This document shows, in pieces, positions 40,901 to 64,000 of a stretch of 64,000 nucleotides of DNA (its first letter is position 1; the number at the start of each line of letters is the position of its first letter). The DNA lies in contig CATNEN010000003.1 of NCBI GenBank assembly GCA_950097015.1, forward strand, positions 6,200,001 to 6,264,000, in the 5' to 3' direction. Under the pieces are notes generated by a model. That model saw only the letters and a program-made list of their open reading frames with translations, had not been told where the DNA came from and made no database searches. The position numbers and the translations under genes are program-made. Origin of the DNA: Macrostomum hystrix (taxonomy: Eukaryota > Animalia > Platyhelminthes).

Positions 40901-51310
<10,410 letters not shown>

Positions 51311-51516: not shown

Positions 51517-51720
51517 ATTGAAAAACTTTAGTTCGGTTTGGTTAGTGGTCCGAAAATACTAGCAGGTTAAAAACTAATTTTAAATCTGTCAAATAAAATA
51601 TCATCACACCCACCTCACTCCCTGTCACCCACCTCACTCCATGTCACCCACCTCACTCCATGTCACCCACCTCACTCCATGTCAACCACCTCACTCCATG
51701 TCACCCACCTCACTCCATAT
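51517..51720 (+). repeat. Direct repeat copy 2 plus 19-bp (TCACCCACCTCACTCCATG)n tail
   Basis: Matches 43882-44028. Confidence 0.85.
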
Positions 51721-52476
51721 TTTGCTTGGTGTAAATATTTAGGTAGTGAATCAATATCATAGTTTTTTGCTGTTGTAATTAAAGCTTTGCAAATTTAATG
51801 CGTTTATCGTCCACCACACGTATTCTCATCAAAGTAAATGTTTTACTTATTTATTGGTGTATTTATCAAAAAATTATCCGTTCCGAAAGATAATTGCTGC
51901 AAAAGTTTCAATGAGCACTACTGTCTACTAAAAGTTAGCCATTAAGTAATACGTATAAGTGTTTTTTTCTATTTTTACATCCATAAAAAGAAATCATGCA
52001 CGACTTAAAAAATTGAATTTTGAGACTAAACTTTTTTGTCGCTCTTAAACGCATAATTATAAGCTTCAACGTTGTTTTGTTTAATATTATTTCATTATTG
52101 ACCAAAGTGATTTGTATCGTGTTTTCTGAGAGAAAAAAATTGGACCACATTTGCAGCCAGCTATTGTGGAGGCTGCTTCACCCACACAAATCTCTACCCA
52201 TTACATATTTTACAGCTGAGTCATCCATAGGACACAATTCGTCTCCCTTGTGTTGTGAATCAATCGAACTCTCTACCTATAAATAATATATATAATGGTA
52301 CATGGTTCTGCATTGTATTTTTACGATTATATCTTGAGTAAAACTTCATGGACACAAGAGTGCTTAATGTATTTTCTTCTTCGTCATTAGACTATTAGAG
52401 TGTCTGAGTATATAATTGCCAGACTTTGATTGACTTGACCAATCGAAAGATAAAACGTAAACCGACACAGTTTACT

Positions 52477-55400
52477 TCAATATATCGCGCACTCTTGAGG
52501 CTGTTTATTGCCAACCTTAGTCCAGACTAGCTCAATCAGAAGGATGAACAGTCCAATGCAGTACAGACTGCCTGTGACAATGAAACAACCACCAACGCCC
52601 TCCATGTCGATGGAGTCGGCCTCCGTTGATCTTCCGCCGCCGCTTTTGCCACAATCGGTGAAATTCTCCGCAGACCAGTAGTGATTGAATAGACGCTGCA
52701 TCAGACCGGACTCGTGCATTTTCTGCAGACTGGAGAAACAAATGGCGCAATGATATTTGAGCCAATATGACCTATTCGGGCTTCCGGGAAGACCGGCAGT
52801 GGTCACTTTTTATGGATACTGGAGACCAAGTACTTAACACTCCATTACTTGGAGATCTCAAGCTTAAAATATCGCCTTTAAGTCCTACGAGGCACCCGCA
52901 CATGAATACTCACACAGGTGTGTACATCTGACCTGAATTTCCCATCGTCAGGCAGTGTACACTCTGACTCTATAGATTTTCGCGCTAAAGGGAAAATTGG
53001 CACCGCGACCTTACGCATTTAAGTGCTACACTAGAAGGGCCTACCTTCAAGTCGGGATTATTTTAGCAGTGGAAATACCAAGCTATTCCCCCCATATGGT
53101 ACGTTCTGACTGTTCATGCGAAATATGACGCTGACTGTTTCGTCACAAGCAATTTTTTTTCATCTGCGTCATAAATCGTAGTCACCAAAAATGACTCAAG
53201 CATATTTCTTTGTCCAAAGAAAGTATGTCAATTAGCGTTGCACTTGTAGCATTGTGCTGCAAAGATAAGTCAGTTTATTGTACTAAACACGATAATAATG
53301 AGATGTTTAAATGTGACGAAAGTTGAGAATAATTGCGCAGTGATAAAAATCTGACTTCGTGTGACGTGAAAAATTACTGCTGTTACGCAAAAATAATAAC
53401 AAAGCTACATGAGAGATTCAGCACAAACTGAAACATGGGAAATAATCACAAAAATGTAATCAAAATAGCCATTTTTATTTTCTTCTTCTGTTAAGAACTA
53501 ATTTCTACATCATGGTTTTAACAGATTTAAAAACTATTATTAATTAATTCGTTTATGAATTAGAGCAGTTGATCATTCGGTGCGGTAATTTAGTAACGTA
53601 GTTTTACGTTAATTCGAATTGTTATAAATCTGCTTTGTGTATCTAGTGTGTCTTGCATGAAAAGTTAACAATGTAAACTTATGCATCAAATTTTACTCTT
53701 GTACTGTAAAAAGAACAATAGCAGCAAGGCTTAGAGACTATCAGATTTCTATATTTATAATGCTAGCTAGTGCCACTAGTTGTATTGCATTATAGCTTTT
53801 GTCTTCTTTTTATGTATATGTAGTATGTTTTTTATGTTTAAATAAAATATGCCCTTTTGTTTTGTCTCCATATGCACTATAAATCACACTTGGGGACACT
53901 TTAGAGTGGTGAACCATGGCATTAGATCAATTTAGCTAATTAGATTACCTAGCTATTAAAATTAACTACATACATTTACAAAACTATGATTATGTTTTTA
54001 TACATAGCTGCTATTGAAAGTGAACTTCAAATAGCAAAATTAATTATATTTTTGTATGACATTGATTAAAACAACTATTTTTTTATTGCTTTTGTAGTAT
54101 ATAATTTTAACATGTAGCTAGCTATGTAATTGCCTATTTTCCTTTTCTTATTTCCTATCTCCATTTTGTTAGATGGACATAAGTTAGACCAACAAAGTAT
54201 TATATTATATTTATTTTATAGTCAATATAGAAATATCAACTTTTGTAATATAATTATACAAATTAAATATTATATATATATATTATATAGGACAGATACT
54301 TAGCTACTTATATATCTACTATTGCCTAAAATTGTGAAATATGAAGATAGAAGGAACCTTGGGTTATTATAAAAAAATTTTATAGTAAAAAAACCTTATA
54401 AACACTTAATTTATGCATTTTAGCATAACCACATGATATAAATAGCAATATTTAAACAATTATCAAGAGCAAATAATATGTTAGTAGCTTGTTTTAGCTA
54501 GCTTAGTAAAAATGCTAAATGGTTTTCTTTTCTGTTTTTTAAAGTCTGCTTAAACACTAAAGCTTCATAAGTAAATGGTTATACAGTATGATATTTAATT
54601 TGTTTGTTTTGTTAGTATTAGTTTTTTATCTTCATTTCAGATGGCAGCATCAAATAAAAAATCAAAAATAAGTCCAAAGAAAAAACCACCAGATAATAGA
54701 AGTCTTCTTGTAGAGGAGAACTTATCAGTTAATGATATGCTCTCCTTACTTTATGATGGCATGCAACATACTGATGGTTCACCAATCTCAGCTTGTAGTG
54801 CCAGTGCTGCCAGCCTGGACACTATGATCAGTTCAGCTGCTCCAACCATGGCTATCGACAAAGCAGCTGATAGTGCAGCCATCTCAGCTTGCAGTGCCAG
54901 TGCTGCCAGCCTGGACACTATGATCAGTTCAGCTGCTCCAACCATGGCTGTCGACAAAGCAGCTGATAGTGCAGCCATCTCAGCTTGCAGTGCCAGTGCT
55001 GCCAGCCTGGACACTATGATCAGTTCAGCTGCTCCAACCATGGCTGTCGACAAAGCAGCTGATAGTGCAGCCATCTCAGCTTGCAGTGCCAGTGCTGCCA
55101 GCCTAGACACTATGATCAGTTCAGCTGCTCCAACCATGGCTGTCGAAAAAGCAGCTGATAGTGCAGCCATCTCAGCTTGCAGTGCCAGTGCTGCCAGCCT
55201 GGACACTATGATCAGTTCAGCTGCTCCAATCATGGCTGTCGACAAAGCAGCTGATAGTGCAGCCATCTCAGCTTGCAGTGCCAGTGCTGCCAGCCTGGAC
55301 ACTATGATCAGTTCAGCTGCTCCAACCATGGCTGTCGACAAAGCAGCTGATAGTGCAGCCATCTCAGCTTGCAGTGCCAGTGCTGCCAGCCTGGACACTA

Positions 55401-58400
55401 TGATCAGTTCAGCTGCTCCAACCATGGCTGTCGACAAAGCAGCTGATAGTCCAGCTTGCAGTGGTGTCTCAGCGTCTGAGCGTCTCATCACTACCACTAG
55501 TGGGTCGTCTCGTAATAGCTCTCATCGTAGACTCTTATTTCCTCCAGTGGATCTAGATGCCTCTGACAATGATGAGGATGTTTGTTGCATAGAGGACACA
55601 GAAGACAAGCGAGCTAGTTCCGAGGCTTTTAAAGACTTAAGTAACTCAAGCAGTTTGAAATCGCCATCAGATAAGCGACGAGGAATAAGTTATGTATGTC
55701 ATTTGGACAATACTCATCTAATTGTCGGTTCTCGAATTTCCGAGCATTTTAATCGACATCATCTTGCAGAAATTTTAGTTGCTGACTCCTTTGAGTCTAT
55801 TAAGGTGGCCTTGTTTACTTTTAATGAGACAAAGTTTGGCCCTGTGCCGAAAAAACGAAAGAAAGATCTTAAGTCAAGTTCCAGGCAAGGAAAGGATTTT
55901 ATCTGTCATTTGGACAACAGTCACAAGATTAGAAGCTCTAGATTCTCTGAGCATTTCAAGCGATTCCACTCTAAAGATTTGGAGGGCATGAGTATTAAAA
56001 AACTTATAGAAGCCACCAAGCAGCACACGTTTAGCAAAGTAGCCAACGAAAGCAATAAGAATCAGCAGTGTCCACTCTGCAATGTTCCGATATTTAGTTC
56101 GCTAACTAGCCACCTGGAGCATTGGCACAAATTGTCGAAGGATGAAGCTCTTTCAGCTGAAAAGGAAAAGAAGGCCAAAAATGTGGAAGAAGCTGTCCGT
56201 CATTCGTGGGCCCAAAAGAACGACGGCTCAGAAAAGCAAAAAACAACACCAACAGAGCCCTCTCTTGACGACTTTCAAGATTTTTTACAAACAGTTGCAG
56301 GTGGCAAGCTTGCCTTATCGACGTCACTGGCGTCCCGCCGTGCCATTGCAGCGATCCTAGCAGTATTGGGATCATCCAACCTCATGGACATTATTGCAGA
56401 AAAAAATCGTGCAACGGTCACCGACTTCCTGACACATAAAAGCTCCACTACATCGGATGGCACAAAGAGCTACGTGGAAGGTCTCAAGCGGTTTGGTGTG
56501 TACTTGAAAAGCACATTTTCGAGCCTTATTAAGCAGATGAAAGCAATGAACGAGCTAGACTCATTCCTCTACACTTGCAACAACTACGGACGTTCGAGGC
56601 TGCAAGACAAAAAAGAAGCAGAGGCCGCGCGTCGCCGAAAGCTTGATAAAAACTGCCTCTCTACAGAAGACCTTCAAGTTGTTAGTAAGATGCTAGATGA
56701 GCTTCGCAAGTCCCTATTCGACGAGCCTGTTGGATCCGAAGTATCTGTTCTATTCATCGGACTTCATTTCGTTTTCGGTAAGGGCAATTGTCATCGAGCT
56801 GATGCAGTATCAAATGCCAAAATAGTAGAATTTACTACTTGGAAACATGATCTGCAAGACGACCCTGAAGCCATGTTTGAAGTGGAAAACCACAAGACTA
56901 AAAAACAAGGTGCGGTGATGGTATCCGTGATGGAGATAAGGGATATCCTCATTGCTTACGGCGATTATCGCATGCAAAGTGGTGGCGCTCCTGACGATTA
57001 TTTGTTCGATTACGGTTACAATATTAAGGACCACTCTTTTTCCACTTTTCTGCGAAACTGCAAGAAAAAATACTCTATTTTAAGCCAACTCAATCGAGTT
57101 AACGTCCGAACATTTCGTCACTTCTTTGCTACAAAGTGCCGTGAAGGACTTCCAGAAAAAGAACAAATTCTTCTGAACAAGCGGATGCTCCACACCAAAG
57201 AAGTTGCTCTGCAAAGCTATATGGCGACAACTTCAACGATGGCCAAGGCTGGAAGAATCATTACAGAGAAGCTGTATGACGACACACATTCTACGGAGGA
57301 GAAGCAAAGGGAGGGAGGTGTACTGCAGAGTTCATCAGGAGTGATTCAGAGTCCGCCAGATGTCATGCAAGGTCCGCCAGGAGTGATGCAGAGTCCGCGA
57401 GGAGTGATGCAGAGTTCGCCAGGAGTGATGCAGAGTTCGCCAGGAGTGATGCAGAGTTCGCCAGGAGTGATGCAGAGTCCGCCAGGAGTGATGCAGAGTT
57501 CGCCAGGAGTGATGCAGAGTCCGCGAGGAGTGATGCAGAGTTCGCCAGAAGTGATGCAGAGTTCGCCAGGAAAGAAACGTAAAGGGCCGGAAGAGATGCA
57601 GAGCGATGAAGAAGCAAAAAAGAAAAATAAAGCTAAAACGATCCAGATAGCATCAAACAATATGGTCGAAGGTGACATCGTTTGGGCGAAGTTTAAAACC
57701 TATCCTTGGTGGCCAGCAATGATAGCAAATGACGCTACTCTCGGACAGCATTTACGCCAGACAAAGGCGGGGCAAACGCAAATTTACGTCCAATTTTTTG
57801 AAAAACCGCCCACAGCGTCATGGTTATCCGCCAAGAACATCAAGATGTTTGACGTTAATCAGCTGGAATCGCTCCGGCCTTCGGCTAGTGGTGACCTGTT
57901 GGATGGAATCAATACTGCATGTGAAGCAGTTGTCCTTAATAATTCTGAGCGGCTTGAGAAGTATTTGATTTGAACTACAACTAACATTTACATTTCACTT
58001 TGTTTTTTGTCTCAATAACTAAAAGCTAGTTCTCAGTTCCGTTATATTTTTGCGAAATCAATTGCAATTAAAACATTTTTCACAACATCTTTTGATTGGG
58101 AATCAAATCTGACGGTCACCTGCTAGTTAAAAATCTGACGGTCACCAACTAGTTAAGAATCTGACGAGCCTCCAAATCTGACGGGCACTTCACAATTAGA
58201 AGTCTTTTGATGGGGAATCAATTCTGACGATCACCTGCTAGTTAAAAATCTGACGGTCACCAACTAGTTAAGAATCTGACGAGCCTCCAAATCTGACGGG
58301 CACTTCACAATTAGAAGTCTGTTGATGGGGAATCAAATCTGACAATCACCTGCTAGTTAAAAATCTGACGGTCACCAACTAGTTAAGAATCTGACGAGCC

Positions 58401-61400
58401 TCCAAATCTGACGGGCACTTCACAATTAGAAGTCTGTTGATGGGGAATCAATTCTGACGATCACCTGCTAGTTAAAAATCTGACGGTCACCAACTAGTTA
58501 AGAATCTGACGAGCCTCCAAATCTGACGGGCACTTCACAATTAGAAGTCTTTTGATGGGGAATCAAATCTGACTGACACAAATGGGAATTTTAAATCGTA
58601 GAGTTAGATCAAATCAAAAATTGCACTTCCTAAGAAAATAAAGCACTTCCTAAAAACTTTATGATACAGACCGTTACAAAAAAATATCAAATATGCAATT
58701 TCGTTTTTTGTCTCGATAATCGAAAGCCAGTTTTTAGTTCAGTTATAATTTTTGTGAAATCAATTGCAATGGGAACAATTTGTTCCACGTTATTATGCAT
58801 TTTCTTTTCTGCCTACTCATTTTCGATCTGCTCATTTTCTGCGTACTCATTTTCGATCTGCTCATATTTTTGTTTTTTGTGCTTCGCTCTAAATTAGTTT
58901 TTCGTGTTTCACACTTTGAAGTTCATTTTATAAGCTGCTATTACCGAGGCAATGTAAGCTTTCGAATTTTTTGCTTAGTTGTGCCATGATACCGTTAAAA
59001 ATGACTGTGCCTCATGTAAAAAAATCTGACGGTCACCAACTAGTTAAGAATCTGACGAGCCTCTAAATCTGACGGGCGACTTCACAATTAGAAGTCTTTT
59101 GATGGGGAATCAATTCTGACGATCACCTGCTAGTTAAAAATCTGACGGTCACCAACTAGTTAAGAATCTGACGAGCCTCCAAATCTGACGGGCACTTCAC
59201 AATTAGAAGTCTGTTGATGGGGAATCAAATCTGACAATCACCTGCTAGTTAAAAATCTGACGGTCACCAACTAGTTAAGAATCTGACGAGCCTCCAAATC
59301 TGACGGGCACTTCACAATTAGAAGTCTTTTGATGGGGAATCAATTCTGACGATCACCTGCTAGTTAAAAATCTGACGGTCACCAACTAGTTAAGAATCTG
59401 ACGAGCCTCCAAATCTGACGGGCACTTCACAATTAGAAGTCTGTTGATGGGGAATCAAATCTGACAATCACCTGCTAGTTAAAAATCTGACGGTCACCAA
59501 CTAGTTAAGAATCTGACGAGCCTCCAAATCTGACGGGCACTTCACAATTAGAAGTCTTTTGATGGGGAATCAAATCTGACGATCACCTGCTAGTTAAAAA
59601 TCTGACGGTCACCAACTAGTTAAGAATCTGACGAGCCTCCAAATCTGACGGGCACTTCACAATTAGAAGTCTTTTGATGGGGAATCAAATCTGACGATCA
59701 CCTGCTAGTTAAAAATCTGACGGGCACTCCACAATTAGAAGTCTTTTGATGGGGAATCAAATCTGACTGACACAAATGGGAATTTTAAATCGTAGAGTTA
59801 GATCAAATCAAAAATTGCACTTCCTAAGAAAATAAAGCACTTCCTAAAAACTTCATGATACAGACCATTACAAAAAATATCAAATATGCAATTTCGTTTT
59901 TTGTCTCGATAATCGAAAGCCAGTTTTCAGTTCAGTTATAATTTTTGTGAAATCAATTGCAATGGGAACAATTTGTTCCACGTTATTATGCATTTTCTTT
60001 TCTGCCTACTCATTTTCGATCTGCTCATTTTCTGCGTACTCATTCTGCGAATCAAATTTTTAAGTTTGTTCTAAAGAAACAAATATACATTTTAATTCTC
60101 TGCAATTAATCGTTTGTTTCTTTCCGCTTTCCTTTCGGTACAAAGTTTTGCTACTTAATTTTGTGTTTCTGTTTCGTTCTTTTATATACAGCATGGCTAT
60201 ATTAGAATTGAGTGCAATTCATGGTTTGTGTAGTTCATTTAGGTCATACAAAAGCACATATAAGGAGTGATTCAATCTTTATGCAGAAAATGACCTACTC
60301 AGTAAAAATAGACGGGCATTACTATTGATTGCTAAGATAAAGTCATGGAATTGTTAAGATCAGAAGCATGGAAAACTACATATGGATGCAGTACGAGTAC
60401 TTAACAGATTATTTTGATAAAATGAAAAAGTCACATTCGTCACATTTGTAAATCTTTATTTTTTCTTGCGTAACTGGTTCAATACTGGCGTCATGCTTTA
60501 TTTATAACTGCTTTTCTACTTGGGTATCATTGAAGTCATTTTTAATTACCAGTGGCATCGTCATTTTTTTTTAATTCGTCATAAAGTACCCCTGTGGATA
60601 GCTACGATGGTATTTTAAATAACCACTACCTAATTCACGATAGCTCCCAAACCGAATGACCGATTTTCGTGAAATTCCCACGTTCAAATGTTCAAATTTT
60701 CTGCTTTTTCCGATGAATAATGAACTAAATTTAAAAGCCCACCCGATGTCAGCGATAAAGAAAAAAGAACAAAGGTATTCGAAATACCGCTGGTTTTTCT
60801 ACTGTTAAGATGGACAACTCACTAGAAGTCAAACAGGCCGGCATAGGCGGCGTCATCCGGATACACAAACGCTACTGTTGCCGGGTTAAAAGTCTCGGAG
60901 AGCATGTAAAACAGTGAGCAGTTCCTAATAGCCCTAGCCAATAGAAAGGTGTAGTCGTTGATGCAGGCGGCGTCCTTTTTGGGAGGCTGAAAGCAAGCGA
61001 GAGGTGACAAAAATCGTTAAATGGAGTTTTCTTGCATCTGTCTGGTAAATTCTAGATGAAACCATCAGTCATTATGAAAGCAGCTAAATTTATGCTCGAA
61101 AAGTAGCTAAAAATATTAATTGCTGCAAAATCAGTAAAGTTACACATAAAGGAGCTTTCATTGATGACATTCAATCAACCATAAAGCTTTTGTCTAACGC
61201 TGGCAAAATACAAGTTGTAGTTTTATCAGCAGATTGCGCAAATCGAAACAGAATGTCTTTCTTTAATTACCAATGGTCAATAGCAGACTCGATAGAATGC
61301 AATCACTATGACATTGTGAAAGGAAATCGATACAATACGCAAATTATGAGACTTATGAGACTTTGCCAGCCGTAAGATAAGCAACTGAAGCAAAATGCTC

Positions 61401-64000
61401 TTAATTCTAAGTCGGTATTAAATGACACCAAAATTAGTACCCAGTGCTACTCACATCGTGCGGGCACTCTTCAGGAGGAGGCATGACAACCATGGAATCC
61501 GCAAGCTCTTTGTAAATTCCAGACTGGGCCATAGTCAGCAGGGTGTACACGTTGGTGTCGCCAGGAATGTAAGGCTTTACGGTACTCTGAGAAACCAGGT
61601 CTGACAGAGTTTTTATGGGATGCTCCGTGACGGTAACCGTGAGGTGAGCAGTTAAGTCACCTAAAATGAAGAATCAAAAGCTTTTAGCTTTCTCAGACGC
61701 ACACAATTTAAGCCAATATTTGTACCCGTAATAATGATAATTGCAGGAGGGCTGCGGGCAATGGCACATCATTTGGTAACACTAGACCCGCAGCCAGCGA
61801 GCAGGCAATACTAACCATTTCACTGACTCCTGGGCAAACACGCATACAGATACTGTACGCAGGCACACGCTCACACTGGTGTGTACATCTGCCCTGACTT
61901 TCTCATCGTCAGGCAGTGTGTACTCTCACTGTGCCTTAAGAGTTTTCCCTCAAGGGTGAAAATTGCACGACAAGCCCCCAAGCCCCCAAGCCTTATCTCC
62001 GCGGCTGCGCCCCAAATGAATAAGGCCTCGCCGCAGAATCGAGCTCAGGGACCTCGGTGCGAGAGGTGCTCTGCCACTTGACCCCTTTTGTACCCGTAAA
62101 AGCTCCGAATATGACGACGGTAAACATCCACCAGAATGCCATGACAGTCCGGGGCGACATTGCGAATGGATAAAAGTCCTGGCCCTGCTGCAAGAAGCTG
62201 CCAATGATACTCCAGATGTACTCTTGAAGCCAGATCTCGTCCGCTACAGCGTACTCAAGGCGTAGATTGTAAGCTGAGAAGGGAGAGTATCTAGCCAGAA
62301 TCCACATGAACAATGAGCCGAAGGCAACCGTACCAAGCAGTAGGAACCAGACTGAGGGGCTGAGCGGCGTGAACACATTCCAGATCTTCGTGTCTCGCGG
62401 AGGCTTCGGTACTAGAACAGCGGTTGATTGGTCAAACAGTGGCGTCGAGAAATCAACAACTGAATCACGAATGGATGTCTTCGTAAAAGGACCGCAGCCT
62501 AGATCTGAAATCTAAAGGCGATTTTATTAATACAAAATAAGGTATCAAGCAAAAACAATATTTTTGCTGTTCCTCAGAATTCAAGTTTACCAACCCCTCT
62601 CTGGACCTCTCCGACACATCCGGAAAAATAAGGCTTGCCAGGTTGTGGAGCTCCCCAGTTTCCATCGTCGGGAGCTTTTGTTACGAAACTGAAGCGGTGG
62701 TCGGCAACACGCATAATTAAATTCTTGAAACATTTAGTAAAAACAGAGAAACAAAAAAGACATCTCTCGTCATCCCAAAACCCACCGAAAGTCCATTTTT
62801 GCGGCAACGATTTCCAAAATGTCACGAGTCATGCCGTGAATGATGACGGTTTTGTTTGGAAATTGTGCTACATAGTCAGTCATTGGAGATGTCTGTAAAA
62901 AATGCGACAAAATAAAATACGAGCACGATCTAGTAAATATTTAAAAAATCCCTACTGGGGGAGCGCAGACAATGAGTGTCTCGTTCTTGAAGCCCATGAA
63001 GGTGTTGGGAAAGGCCAGGCTCACTCCCTTGTAGCGAAACTGCTTGCTCAGAGAGCCGCTCGACACATCGAACTCAGCGGACTTCAGCATCGAGATCGGA
63101 GACCATCGCAGCTCATTGTAGGACGCGACCACTTCGACACCTTGTGAGCTCAAGTGTCTGCTTGAGCTGTTGTACGAGATGAGGCCACGCTGAGTGTCAT
63201 AGTTGCTCATCTGCAGCATCGAGTGGGTTCATGGCAGGTGAGTGAGTAAGTGAGTGAGTGCAGCGACTCACTGGACTCTGACATCATGTCTAAATGTGAG
63301 CAGCTCACGCTGAGCAGTTTGCTGAGCACAGTCGATCCCGATGTCCAGTGCTGCAGCGGAAAGCACGAGGCGTTGCTCGGAGAGAATCCCGGATCCATCA
63401 GCGAGTCGTTCAGCGCCTTGGCCACGGCTTCCACCGCATCCACGAACCGAGCGTCCAGACTCTGCTCAATGTGGTGCGGTGCGGTGCGGTGCGGTGATTG
63501 AGCTGTGACTCACTCACTCACGCTGATGACAGACGTGAGCAAGGCAGCACTGCAGTGTGACAGTCTCACCCGAATTGAGTCCAGCTGGCACTGAGGAAAC
63601 ACATCCATCACTGCTGCTGTGCAGTGAGTGAACACGCTGCCTCTCAGCAAAGCAACGTTCGCGTTCGCTGGCGTCACGCTGAGCACATCCGCCTTGGACA
63701 GTCCAGTGTCGAGAATGAGCCAGAAGTAGTTCTGCTGCATGACTGCAGCTTCACTGGCCAGCCTCAGGACTGAGAGCGCATTGCGAGGACTGGCCAGCAG
63801 CAGCAGCTTGAACAGTCTCTTCTTCACCAGACGCTTGAGGTGCTGCACCAGGCTCGGAGTGACAGAGGCGTTGGCAGTGTTGTCCACTTGGAATGTGAGA
63901 CTGCTCACTCCGGCAGCGGTGAGGCCGCTCTGCAGGCTCTGCACAACGGTGCTGCCTGCAGGCATTGGTGTGTTTGAATCGTCACAACTTGTACATCAGG
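52477..64000 (-). CDS. Ionotropic glutamate receptor-family subunit (divergent, with ATD), 5' end beyond window
   Basis: Exons >63965-63570, 63461-63309, 63210-62956, 62892-62786, 62688-62591, 62504-62094, 61660-61455, 60986-60823 and 52729-52477; phases consistent. Motifs DGNWG, FTKTSIRDSVVDFSTP, PLSPSVW, GSFLQQG, FWWMFTVVIFGAFTGDLTAHLTV, LQKMHESGLMQRLFNHYW, M4 GVGGCFIV. Confidence 0.9.
54641..57973 (+). CDS. 1110-aa zinc finger - tyrosine recombinase - PWWP fusion protein
   Basis: Catalytic set R719 (CHRADAV), K752 (NHKT), R823-x-x-R826-H (RTFRH), H851 (MLH), Y860; helical core-binding-like region (LDDFQDFLQTVAGGK...); three Zn-finger-like motifs; PWWP GDIVWAKFKTYPWWPAMI...YVQFF...SW; uninterrupted 3.3-kb ORF. 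Confidence 0.88.
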   Translation: MAASNKKSKISPKKKPPDNRSLLVEENLSVNDMLSLLYDGMQHTDGSPISACSASAASLDTMISSAAPTMAIDKAADSAAISACSASAASLDTMISSAAPTMAVDKAADSAAISACSASAASLDTMISSAAPTMAVDKAADSAAISACSASAASLDTMISSAAPTMAVEKAADSAAISACSASAASLDTMISSAAPIMAVDKAADSAAISACSASAASLDTMISSAAPTMAVDKAADSAAISACSASAASLDTMISSAAPTMAVDKAADSPACSGVSASERLITTTSGSSRNSSHRRLLFPPVDLDASDNDEDVCCIEDTEDKRASSEAFKDLSNSSSLKSPSDKRRGISYVCHLDNTHLIVGSRISEHFNRHHLAEILVADSFESIKVALFTFNETKFGPVPKKRKKDLKSSSRQGKDFICHLDNSHKIRSSRFSEHFKRFHSKDLEGMSIKKLIEATKQHTFSKVANESNKNQQCPLCNVPIFSSLTSHLEHWHKLSKDEALSAEKEKKAKNVEEAVRHSWAQKNDGSEKQKTTPTEPSLDDFQDFLQTVAGGKLALSTSLASRRAIAAILAVLGSSNLMDIIAEKNRATVTDFLTHKSSTTSDGTKSYVEGLKRFGVYLKSTFSSLIKQMKAMNELDSFLYTCNNYGRSRLQDKKEAEAARRRKLDKNCLSTEDLQVVSKMLDELRKSLFDEPVGSEVSVLFIGLHFVFGKGNCHRADAVSNAKIVEFTTWKHDLQDDPEAMFEVENHKTKKQGAVMVSVMEIRDILIAYGDYRMQSGGAPDDYLFDYGYNIKDHSFSTFLRNCKKKYSILSQLNRVNVRTFRHFFATKCREGLPEKEQILLNKRMLHTKEVALQSYMATTSTMAKAGRIITEKLYDDTHSTEEKQREGGVLQSSSGVIQSPPDVMQGPPGVMQSPRGVMQSSPGVMQSSPGVMQSSPGVMQSPPGVMQSSPGVMQSPRGVMQSSPEVMQSSPGKKRKGPEEMQSDEEAKKKNKAKTIQIASNNMVEGDIVWAKFKTYPWWPAMIANDATLGQHLRQTKAGQTQIYVQFFEKPPTASWLSAKNIKMFDVNQLESLRPSASGDLLDGINTACEAVVLNNSERLEKYLI
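54785..55450 (+). repeat. Coding 96-bp (32-aa) tandem repeat, 7 copies
   Basis: Units start at 54785, 54881 ... 55361. Confidence 0.95.
57316..57570 (+). repeat. Coding 21-bp heptad repeat (GVMQSSP), 12 copies
   Basis: Translation of the YR-PWWP linker. Confidence 0.93.
58088..58573. repeat. 115-bp tandem array 1 (~4 units)
   Basis: GATGGGG anchors at 58209, 58324, 58439 and 58554 (GATTGGG variant at 58094). Confidence 0.95.
59020..59766. repeat. 115-bp tandem array 2 (~6.5 units)
   Basis: Anchors at 59101, 59216, 59331, 59446, 59561, 59676, then a shortened unit at 59748. Confidence 0.95.
60602..60805 (-). mobile_element. Internally deleted MITE-like family A copy
   Basis: Reverse complement matches both 48700-48752 and 49128-49272 (GGTCATTCGGTT..GCTAT.GTGAA.TA.G.AGTGG.TATTT.AAATA). 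Confidence 0.7.
61732..62086 (-). mobile_element. SINE family B copy inserted at an iGluR exon/intron junction
   Basis: 13-bp TSD TTTGTACCCGTAA (61719-61731 / 62087-62099). Confidence 0.88.

Follow-up and report, generated by a model that had tools for sequence, protein, structure and literature searches.

A candidate Crypton-like transposon of Macrostomum hystrix encoding a predicted tyrosine recombinase with a C-terminal PWWP domain

The locus and its element

The window analysed here is a stretch of 64,000 nucleotides from the flatworm Macrostomum hystrix (contig CATNEN010000003.1, positions 6,200,001 to 6,264,000 of the forward strand), and all positions below refer to its first letter unless a contig is named. 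It contains an element of 7.5 kb that encodes one protein of 1110 amino acids (aa), in which a central region assigned below to the tyrosine recombinases is followed by a C-terminal PWWP domain. Between 53090 and 60592, the corresponding open reading frame (ORF) is, opposite-strand repeat artefacts aside, the sole long one, and it is devoid of introns. The element is organised as follows, the sister subfamily being a related set of copies in the same genome.

53090..60592, + strand: whole element, left CCCC to right CCCC (7,503 bp); ends align to those of the sister subfamily
53090..53093, + strand: left junction CCCC, a short terminal direct repeat and putative crossover site
53094..53112, + strand: left spacer ATAT and left inverted arm GGTACGTTCTGACTG, conserved with the sister left end
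54641..57973, + strand: single intact ORF, 1110 aa
54771..55455, + strand: in-frame tandem repeat near the N-terminus, 7.1 x 96 nt (32-aa units of low complexity)
55697..56128, + strand: three zinc-finger-like motifs, read off the translation
56258..57295, + strand: predicted tyrosine recombinase, aa 540-885, helical core-binding and catalytic domain (R719, K752, R826, H851, Y860)
57324..57603, + strand: 21-nt in-frame repeats, about 12 copies, encoding a linker of 7-aa repeats, then a basic stretch
57671..57919, + strand: PWWP domain, aa 1011-1093 (cage Y1021, W1024, F1052)
58088..58573, + strand: first 115-bp tandem array with TCTGACGR motifs
59020..59850, + strand: second 115-bp tandem array, again with TCTGACGR, within a 1.19-kb internal duplication
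60575..60592, + strand: right inverted arm TTCGTCATAAAGTA and right junction CCCC (60589-60592)

An initial annotation of this DNA had described an uninterrupted ORF of 1110 aa carrying a tyrosine recombinase and a PWWP domain of the type that reads methylated H3K36. The ORF is indeed uninterrupted at 54641-57973 (+), and all the residue numbers given in that annotation agree with the translation.

The recombinase and PWWP domains

The identity of the central region is not apparent from standard searches. With aa 501-900, no Pfam family was matched even at E<=10, Phage_integrase (PF00589) and DUF3504 (PF12012) included, and a single-sequence search of the PDB with the recombinase region returned nanobody noise only. 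Because both searches were uninformative, identification required profiles and structure. A profile made from five subfamilies of the same genome has a single match in the PDB, the archaeal recombinase XerA (E=0.25, improving to E=0.0017 with a deeper alignment). The alignment with XerA is in register across the core-binding and catalytic parts, catalytic residues included. A helical core-binding domain precedes the catalytic fold of the tyrosine recombinase superfamily, and the catalytic set occurs in order, with the box I Arg, the beta-hairpin Lys, the HxxR Arg, the His/Trp and the Tyr nucleophile. These residues, R719, K752, R826, H851 and Y860, are invariant in the five aligned subfamilies and in all full-length relatives. 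The distant relative P0014 scores 25.9 bits with a curated recombinase model, the cut-off of which is 27.1. The structure model of the domain is matched equally well by type IB topoisomerases and by recombinases.

One member of the canonical R-H-R-Y tetrad, the His at the first position of HxxR, is absent. Position 823 is occupied by R in the window protein, by Lys in the sister subfamily, and K, N or no residue is found there in relatives, the histidine being missing from every full-length one. The resulting R-K-R-H-Y active site resembles that of topoisomerase IB, and type IB topoisomerases carry a basic residue at the position of the HxxR His. The concern raised by the missing His is answered indirectly, since the whole family lacks it and yet the Lys-bearing sister subfamily has recently transposed. 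As judged from these alignments, the central domain belongs to a tyrosine recombinase lineage with an R-K-R-H-Y active site. The earlier proposal of a tyrosine recombinase is thus borne out by the profile match to XerA, by the structure and by the invariant residues, and its remark that the canonical His is replaced by Arg is confirmed at R823. For aa ~540-870, it had anticipated a lambda-integrase fold; Pfam gave no match, and the recombinase fold was recovered through the profile and the structure.

The PWWP domain is the only Pfam domain recognised in the 1110-aa protein (PF00855, aa 1011-1093; E=2.3e-17, 63.7 bits vs a cut-off of 25.6). In sequence searches of the PDB, its closest match is NSD3 PWWP1 (2.4e-14), then NSD2 PWWP1 and MSH6 (8.7e-14). 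The predicted model of the domain (pLDDT 86.8) has a TM score of 0.82 to NSD3 PWWP1 and a root mean square deviation of 2.2 A to MSH6. HMMER aligns Y1021, W1024 and F1052 with Y233, W236 and F266 of NSD2, which form its aromatic cage. Across the five subfamilies, the PWWPs of which are 38-49% identical, the first cage position is Y or F and the two others are invariantly W and F. This conservation points to selection on the reader pocket. Both the NSD/MSH6 type of the domain and the intact Y/W/F cage, as initially proposed, are therefore upheld, the former by Pfam, the PDB sequence matches and the predicted model, the latter by the alignment with NSD2 and by aromatic residues in all five subfamilies.

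The association of the two domains is a property of the family. A PWWP is found at the C-terminus in subfamilies with 42-58% recombinase identity. In a genome search based on the PWWP only, each of the twelve top-scoring loci adjoined a recombinase match, and host PWWP genes scored far lower. Because the domain is C-terminal in diverged subfamilies and host PWWP genes are far more distant, we conclude that the PWWP was captured a single time and kept thereafter. A second recombinase-like family has 27-30% identity to the window domain (L024, C24:5803834-5807754; L025, C2:2890894-2892968). Its ORFs are long and contain neither a PWWP nor any other Pfam domain, and no PWWP or other recognised reader was found in the distant paralogues L023-L026 as a whole.

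Outside this genome, 1.84 billion representative proteins were searched exhaustively with the profile, and only 25 relatives were retrieved, the closest being hypothetical proteins of the flatworm Macrostomum lignano. The M. lignano proteins PAA84835.1 and PAA66829.1 are partial models ending in the repeat linker and are thus silent on the presence of a PWWP; no PWWP was seen in the other relatives among the 25. One weak relative, P0021 (Coregonus sp., CAB1346391.1; E=1.7e-4), is a fish protein model ending in a SET domain; it could be a further recombinase-chromatin fusion or a gene-model artefact.

Upstream of the recombinase, the motifs C353/H359/H369/H373 and C422/H428/H438/H443 are CHHC-like, and C477/C480/H491/H494 is C2H2-like. 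The spacing of the first two (aa 353-443; 55697-55969) is that of CHHC-type fingers, C-x5-H-x9-H-x3/4-H. The finger positions are kept in the M. lignano homologue, and paralogues match the Pfam family zf-U11-48K (E=6e-6). The zf-U11-48K fold also occurs in GTSF1, a piRNA-pathway factor that appeared weakly in the PDB profile search.

Contigs of X1 and X3, the library type of which is not on record, cover 55421-57404 and 57519-58039 with no differences from the window and at a depth of 12-17. The same data have zero coverage of 53600-54387, a segment spanned by one contig in the DNA run X6. This pattern resembles that of a transcript starting at most ~250 bp from the ATG. Pieces ~99% identical were also encountered in run X9, which is labelled as another organism.

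Ends, copies and insertion sites

Six-frame translation of the 220-Mb genome yields 46 matches to the recombinase domain. The sister subfamily comprises five complete copies of ~8 kb that are 99.6-99.9% identical and have sharp ends; intact ORFs of 1124-1163 aa are present in three of them, and the protein is 51-53% identical to that of the window. The window's own subfamily consists of one intact copy, that of the window, and one degraded copy on C1, which shows that this subfamily moved at least once. The copy search thus revealed a multicopy, recently mobile family rather than a single-copy syntenic gene. On the evidence of these copies, the recombinase-PWWP family is a recently mobile Crypton-like transposon and not a single-copy host gene, and the window element itself is very probably a mobile element of this kind.

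Comparison of the sister copies defines the termini. At the left, the flank is followed by CCCC, TAWW and GGTACGTTTCTGACGA; at the right, TCGTCATAAACGAA is followed by CCCC and the flank. In the window element, the left end CCCC-ATAT-GGTACGTTCTGAC starts at 53090 and the right end TTCGTCATAAAGTA-CCCC stops at 60592. The window and sister ends align from CCCC inward, and the flanks outside are unrelated. The sister end motifs were not found in the window with up to three mismatches, an ungapped search that missed the window ends because of one-base indels. When gapped patterns were used, exactly six left and six right ends were found genome-wide, paired at six loci. CCCC is present at both junctions in all six copies, and the element is not flanked by long repeats, whether inverted or direct. 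Two other delimitations were discarded. An extent of 53920-60122, derived from the degraded C1 copy, is too narrow, and the direct repeats at 50669-50946 and 61781-62066 belong to a family resembling short interspersed nuclear elements (~335 bp, at least 40 genome copies, 85-88% identical; window copies at 50669-50946 and 61730-62067), which is unrelated to the element.

The best evidence for a precise and conservative insertion at a single target CCCC is given by copy C39b, which splits a Peptidase_M14 exon. Its left flank corresponds to profile positions 109-146 and its right flank to positions 147-193, and the reconstructed empty site contains one CCCC, across which the reading frame is continuous.

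When the two ends are joined head to tail, inverted arms are brought together around a spacer of ~8 nt. Of the 15 arm positions, 13 pair in the sister element and 11 in that of the window. Inverted arms flanking a spacer are the classic layout of a recombinase core site (PMC3212892). Over the terminal 92 nt at the left and 97 nt at the right, only two adjacent columns vary among the sister copies. These columns lie in the middle of the spacer, CCCCTA[AT/AA/TA/AT/TT]GG (left junctions at L015:2893-2902, L016:3021-3030, L014:2627-2636, L030 and L031), and do not match the present targets. By analogy with Tn916 and CTnDOT, the variable bases may be a carried-over 'coupling sequence'.

The motif TCTGACGR occurs 38 times in the window, always on the + strand and within 58108-59723, for a chance expectation of 3.7. 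These arrays may provide putative accessory binding sites for the recombinase or for the zinc fingers. TCTGACGR equals the core of the left arm, and the arrays lie 3' of the ORF. It is also present in the sister element, inside subterminal repeats of its own that are unrelated.

CCCC is all that the six targets have in common, and the next two bases are usually TG or GG. Coding exons host two of the five sister insertions: C39b interrupts a carboxypeptidase exon, and C25 falls in the terminal exon of a gene for a Cys-loop receptor (Neur_chan_memb, 203-232 of 233 profile positions), where four codons separate it from the stop. The window copy lies within an array of ionotropic glutamate receptor (iGluR) genes, 1.4 kb from a Lig_chan exon. 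Copy C39a lies in a retrotransposon leader, 84 bp upstream of the gag-pol start of a long terminal repeat (LTR) retrotransposon. The LTR retrotransposon gag-pol at L015:2-2818 (-) (C39:278501-281317) is a 939-aa ORF with zf-CCHC, aspartyl protease and RVT_1 domains, and also has a weak cold-shock domain match (CSD, E=3e-5).

Around the window element, the iGluR exon is at 61996-62511 (-; Lig_chan E=1.4e-12). L029 (C3:6266751-6268498), 6 kb downstream, is a diverged local duplicate of both element flanks and part of the tandem iGluR array. This locus, together with C38:16233100 and C3:6536500, was considered as an empty site of the window copy; all three were rejected, as these repeat or duplicate copies are not collinear across the junction. 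A 19-bp satellite with a CACCCACCTCACTCC-like unit occupies 51583-51734 and is matched by over 100 other genomic sites. Elsewhere in the window, strand composition is extremely biased between 32000 and 44000, with a GC skew of -0.57 to -0.79 from 32 to 40 kb that changes sign, to +0.62, at 42-44 kb.

Target choice, rival explanations and known systems

From these data, a mode of transposition can be proposed. The recombinase would join both ends to form a circle, in which the subterminal arms would face each other across the ~8 bp spacer and make up the core site. The circle would then re-integrate by crossover at a target CCCC. We infer that such a circular intermediate is used by the family, the window copy included. 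A 4-bp target would confer almost no sequence specificity. The PWWP would tether the recombinase-DNA complex to nucleosomes bearing H3K36me2/3, and integration would be biased to transcribed gene bodies. Because a conserved H3K36me-type cage is carried by an enzyme with a 4-bp target, guidance by the PWWP is the most economical reading. The two young insertions in coding exons out of five are striking, as selection normally purges such sites, and they would fit a bias of the H3K36me3 type to exons and 3' gene ends; with so tiny a sample, this is suggestive only. Overall, we lean towards an apparently autonomous 7.5-kb transposon, the one protein of which would combine a recombinase with a PWWP tether guiding integration. 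As regards the PWWP taken by itself, a role in target choice appears to us evenly balanced. The broader proposal of a self-aiming family, in which a built-in reader of H3K36 methylation would turn CCCC into a chromatin-defined target in transcribed gene bodies, is put forward tentatively, with slightly less than even confidence.

Several points weigh against such guided transposition. Six insertions are too few for statistics, contexts having been assigned to all but C10 and C33. The targeting of transcribed chromatin is suggested by cage conservation and insertion contexts, which are circumstantial. Recent mobility is established for the sister subfamily, not for the window's own, and a genome search for the empty site of the window copy found none. 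To this are added the unrecorded library type behind the apparent expression, the silence of Pfam on the recombinase region and the missing tetrad His.

The element may also be a mobile recombinase transposon in which the PWWP has a role other than target choice. The domain could anchor the excised circle or the protein to chromatin during cell division, provide non-specific affinity for DNA or nucleosomes, read H4K20me or H3K79me, or help the element to escape silencing. It is indeed known that PWWPs bind DNA as well as histone tails and that members of the family read different marks; moreover, of the six insertions, three lie in contexts that are not evidently genic. Captured readers may help to evade host suppression (10.1101/2021.11.30.470311). 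Nevertheless, the nearest matches of the domain, NSD2/3 PWWP1 and MSH6, are H3K36me2/3 readers, the three cage residues are conserved, a 4-bp target needs a further source of site selection, and two of five recent insertions are exonic. We consider this alternative unlikely, while giving it real weight. A dead enzyme is much harder to sustain. The incomplete tetrad, with R823 here and K, N or no residue in relatives, and the failure of Pfam recombinase models could mean that the recombinase-like domain is inactive without the HxxR His and that the protein merely binds DNA or chromatin. Yet no full-length relative departs from R, K, R, H and Y, the type IB topoisomerases that match the structure model equally well have a basic residue at the same position, and the sister subfamily, also devoid of the His, has five near-identical copies with precise junctions. 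A catalytically dead protein is accordingly very improbable.

Crypton recombinases have been turned into host genes, as exemplified by ZMYM, KCTD1 and QRICH1. By analogy, the window copy could be a stranded or domesticated immobile gene, kept as a chromatin-bound DNA-binding or recombination factor. It is the single intact copy of its subfamily, its ORF is intact and probably transcribed, and Crypton precedents are well documented (PMC3212892). It should, however, be noted that both ends are kept and are conserved with those of a mobile sister despite only 51% protein identity, and that the degraded C1 copy implies at least one move. Moreover, the gene has no introns and every catalytic residue is kept, whereas most of these residues are gone from domesticated DUF3504 proteins (PMC3212892). 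Domestication therefore seems to us improbable, and the mobile element with a PWWP that may guide integration remains the preferred reading.

If this reading is true, the protein would provide the first natural example of a recombinase fused to a reader of an active chromatin mark, and a cis counterpart of LEDGF-guided HIV integration. Choice of landing site by mobile elements is a central issue for genome biology and vector design. A recombinase with its own H3K36me-type reader would offer a natural test of chromatin-guided site-specific recombination, in a simple system with one protein, short defined ends and a nearly sequence-free target. The Crypton class would be extended to flatworms with a new domain architecture, and well-defined junctions are supplied, in contrast to the ends of other Cryptons, which are notoriously difficult to delimit. 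In addition, recent insertions in coding exons bear on the stability of the host genome.

As for known systems, features of DIRS and Ngaro elements (reverse transcriptase and RNase H, split or inverted terminal repeats) were not found: the element has no RVT domain, and the RVT_1 ORFs near other copies belong to neighbouring retrotransposons. Cryptons, reportedly described by Goodwin et al. in 2003, provide the closest parallel to the structure of the element. They encode only a recombinase, lack long terminal repeats and have terminal direct repeats of 4-6 bp (Kojima and Jurka 2011, PMC3212892). The single ORF of the window element likewise encodes a tyrosine recombinase, neither a reverse transcriptase nor any other transposase is present, and long terminal repeats, inverted or direct, are lacking; the short direct repeat at both its ends is the presumed recombination substrate. 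A circular intermediate is thought to mediate movement of Cryptons, which also have varied accessory domains. As with Cryptons, there are multiple copies and precise insertions sparing the target except for the crossover sequence, at least in the sister subfamily. On the other hand, the window recombinase matches neither DUF3504, typical of CryptonA, nor Phage_integrase, and lacks the R-H-R-Y His. The element is thus Crypton-like by its structure, and not through a recombinase phylogeny that would place it in CryptonF, S, A or I. In this sense the initial assignment to a Crypton-like element is supported by the single ORF, the lack of reverse transcriptase and the 4-bp terminal direct repeats. 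A mechanistic likeness to Tn916, CTnDOT and Tn1549, the tyrosine recombinases of which tolerate heterology in the overlap, is suggested by the junction sequences only. These systems differ in being prokaryotic, in their arm-binding N-terminal domains and excisionase partners, and in having no chromatin reader.

The accessory domains recorded in Cryptons are GCR1_C, a C48 peptidase, a DDE transposase and helix-turn-helix motifs, with no PWWP or histone reader among them (PMC3212892). In the searchable literature, no description of a Crypton or tyrosine recombinase fused to a PWWP was found, in agreement with the initial annotation, to which no such element was known. A report linking PWWP and transposons in Magnaporthe was set aside, as it concerns a transposon inserted into a PWWP gene and not a fusion. 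A survey of transposon-chromatin fusions reports, for the most part, retrotransposons and DDE transposons bearing Chromo and PHD readers, and mentions neither PWWP fusions nor recombinase elements (Grau-Bove et al., 10.1101/2021.11.30.470311). Capture of chromatin readers by transposons is thus already known for Chromo and PHD, and the PWWP is a new accessory domain here.

The readers fused in cis to transposon enzymes are mostly chromodomains that send retrotransposons to silent heterochromatin, and the best-studied of these fusions targets H3K9me heterochromatin. In chromoviruses (Ty3/gypsy, e.g., MAGGY) and other reader fusions, as in the present family, a reader of histone marks is carried in cis by the integrating enzyme, and it is proposed or shown to direct integration according to chromatin state. 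However, those elements are retrotransposons or DDE transposons with Chromo or PHD domains, whereas here a recombinase is combined with an H3K36me-type PWWP, H3K36me being characteristic of transcribed gene bodies. To our knowledge, gene-body targeting by a PWWP is known only in trans, in the case of HIV and LEDGF. In the LEDGF/p75-HIV-1 system, an H3K36me3-reading PWWP sends the integrating element into transcribed gene bodies, an outcome that is predicted here. LEDGF/p75 is, however, a host protein that acts in trans through its integrase-binding domain on a DDE-type integrase, whereas in the M. hystrix element the PWWP is within the recombinase protein itself.

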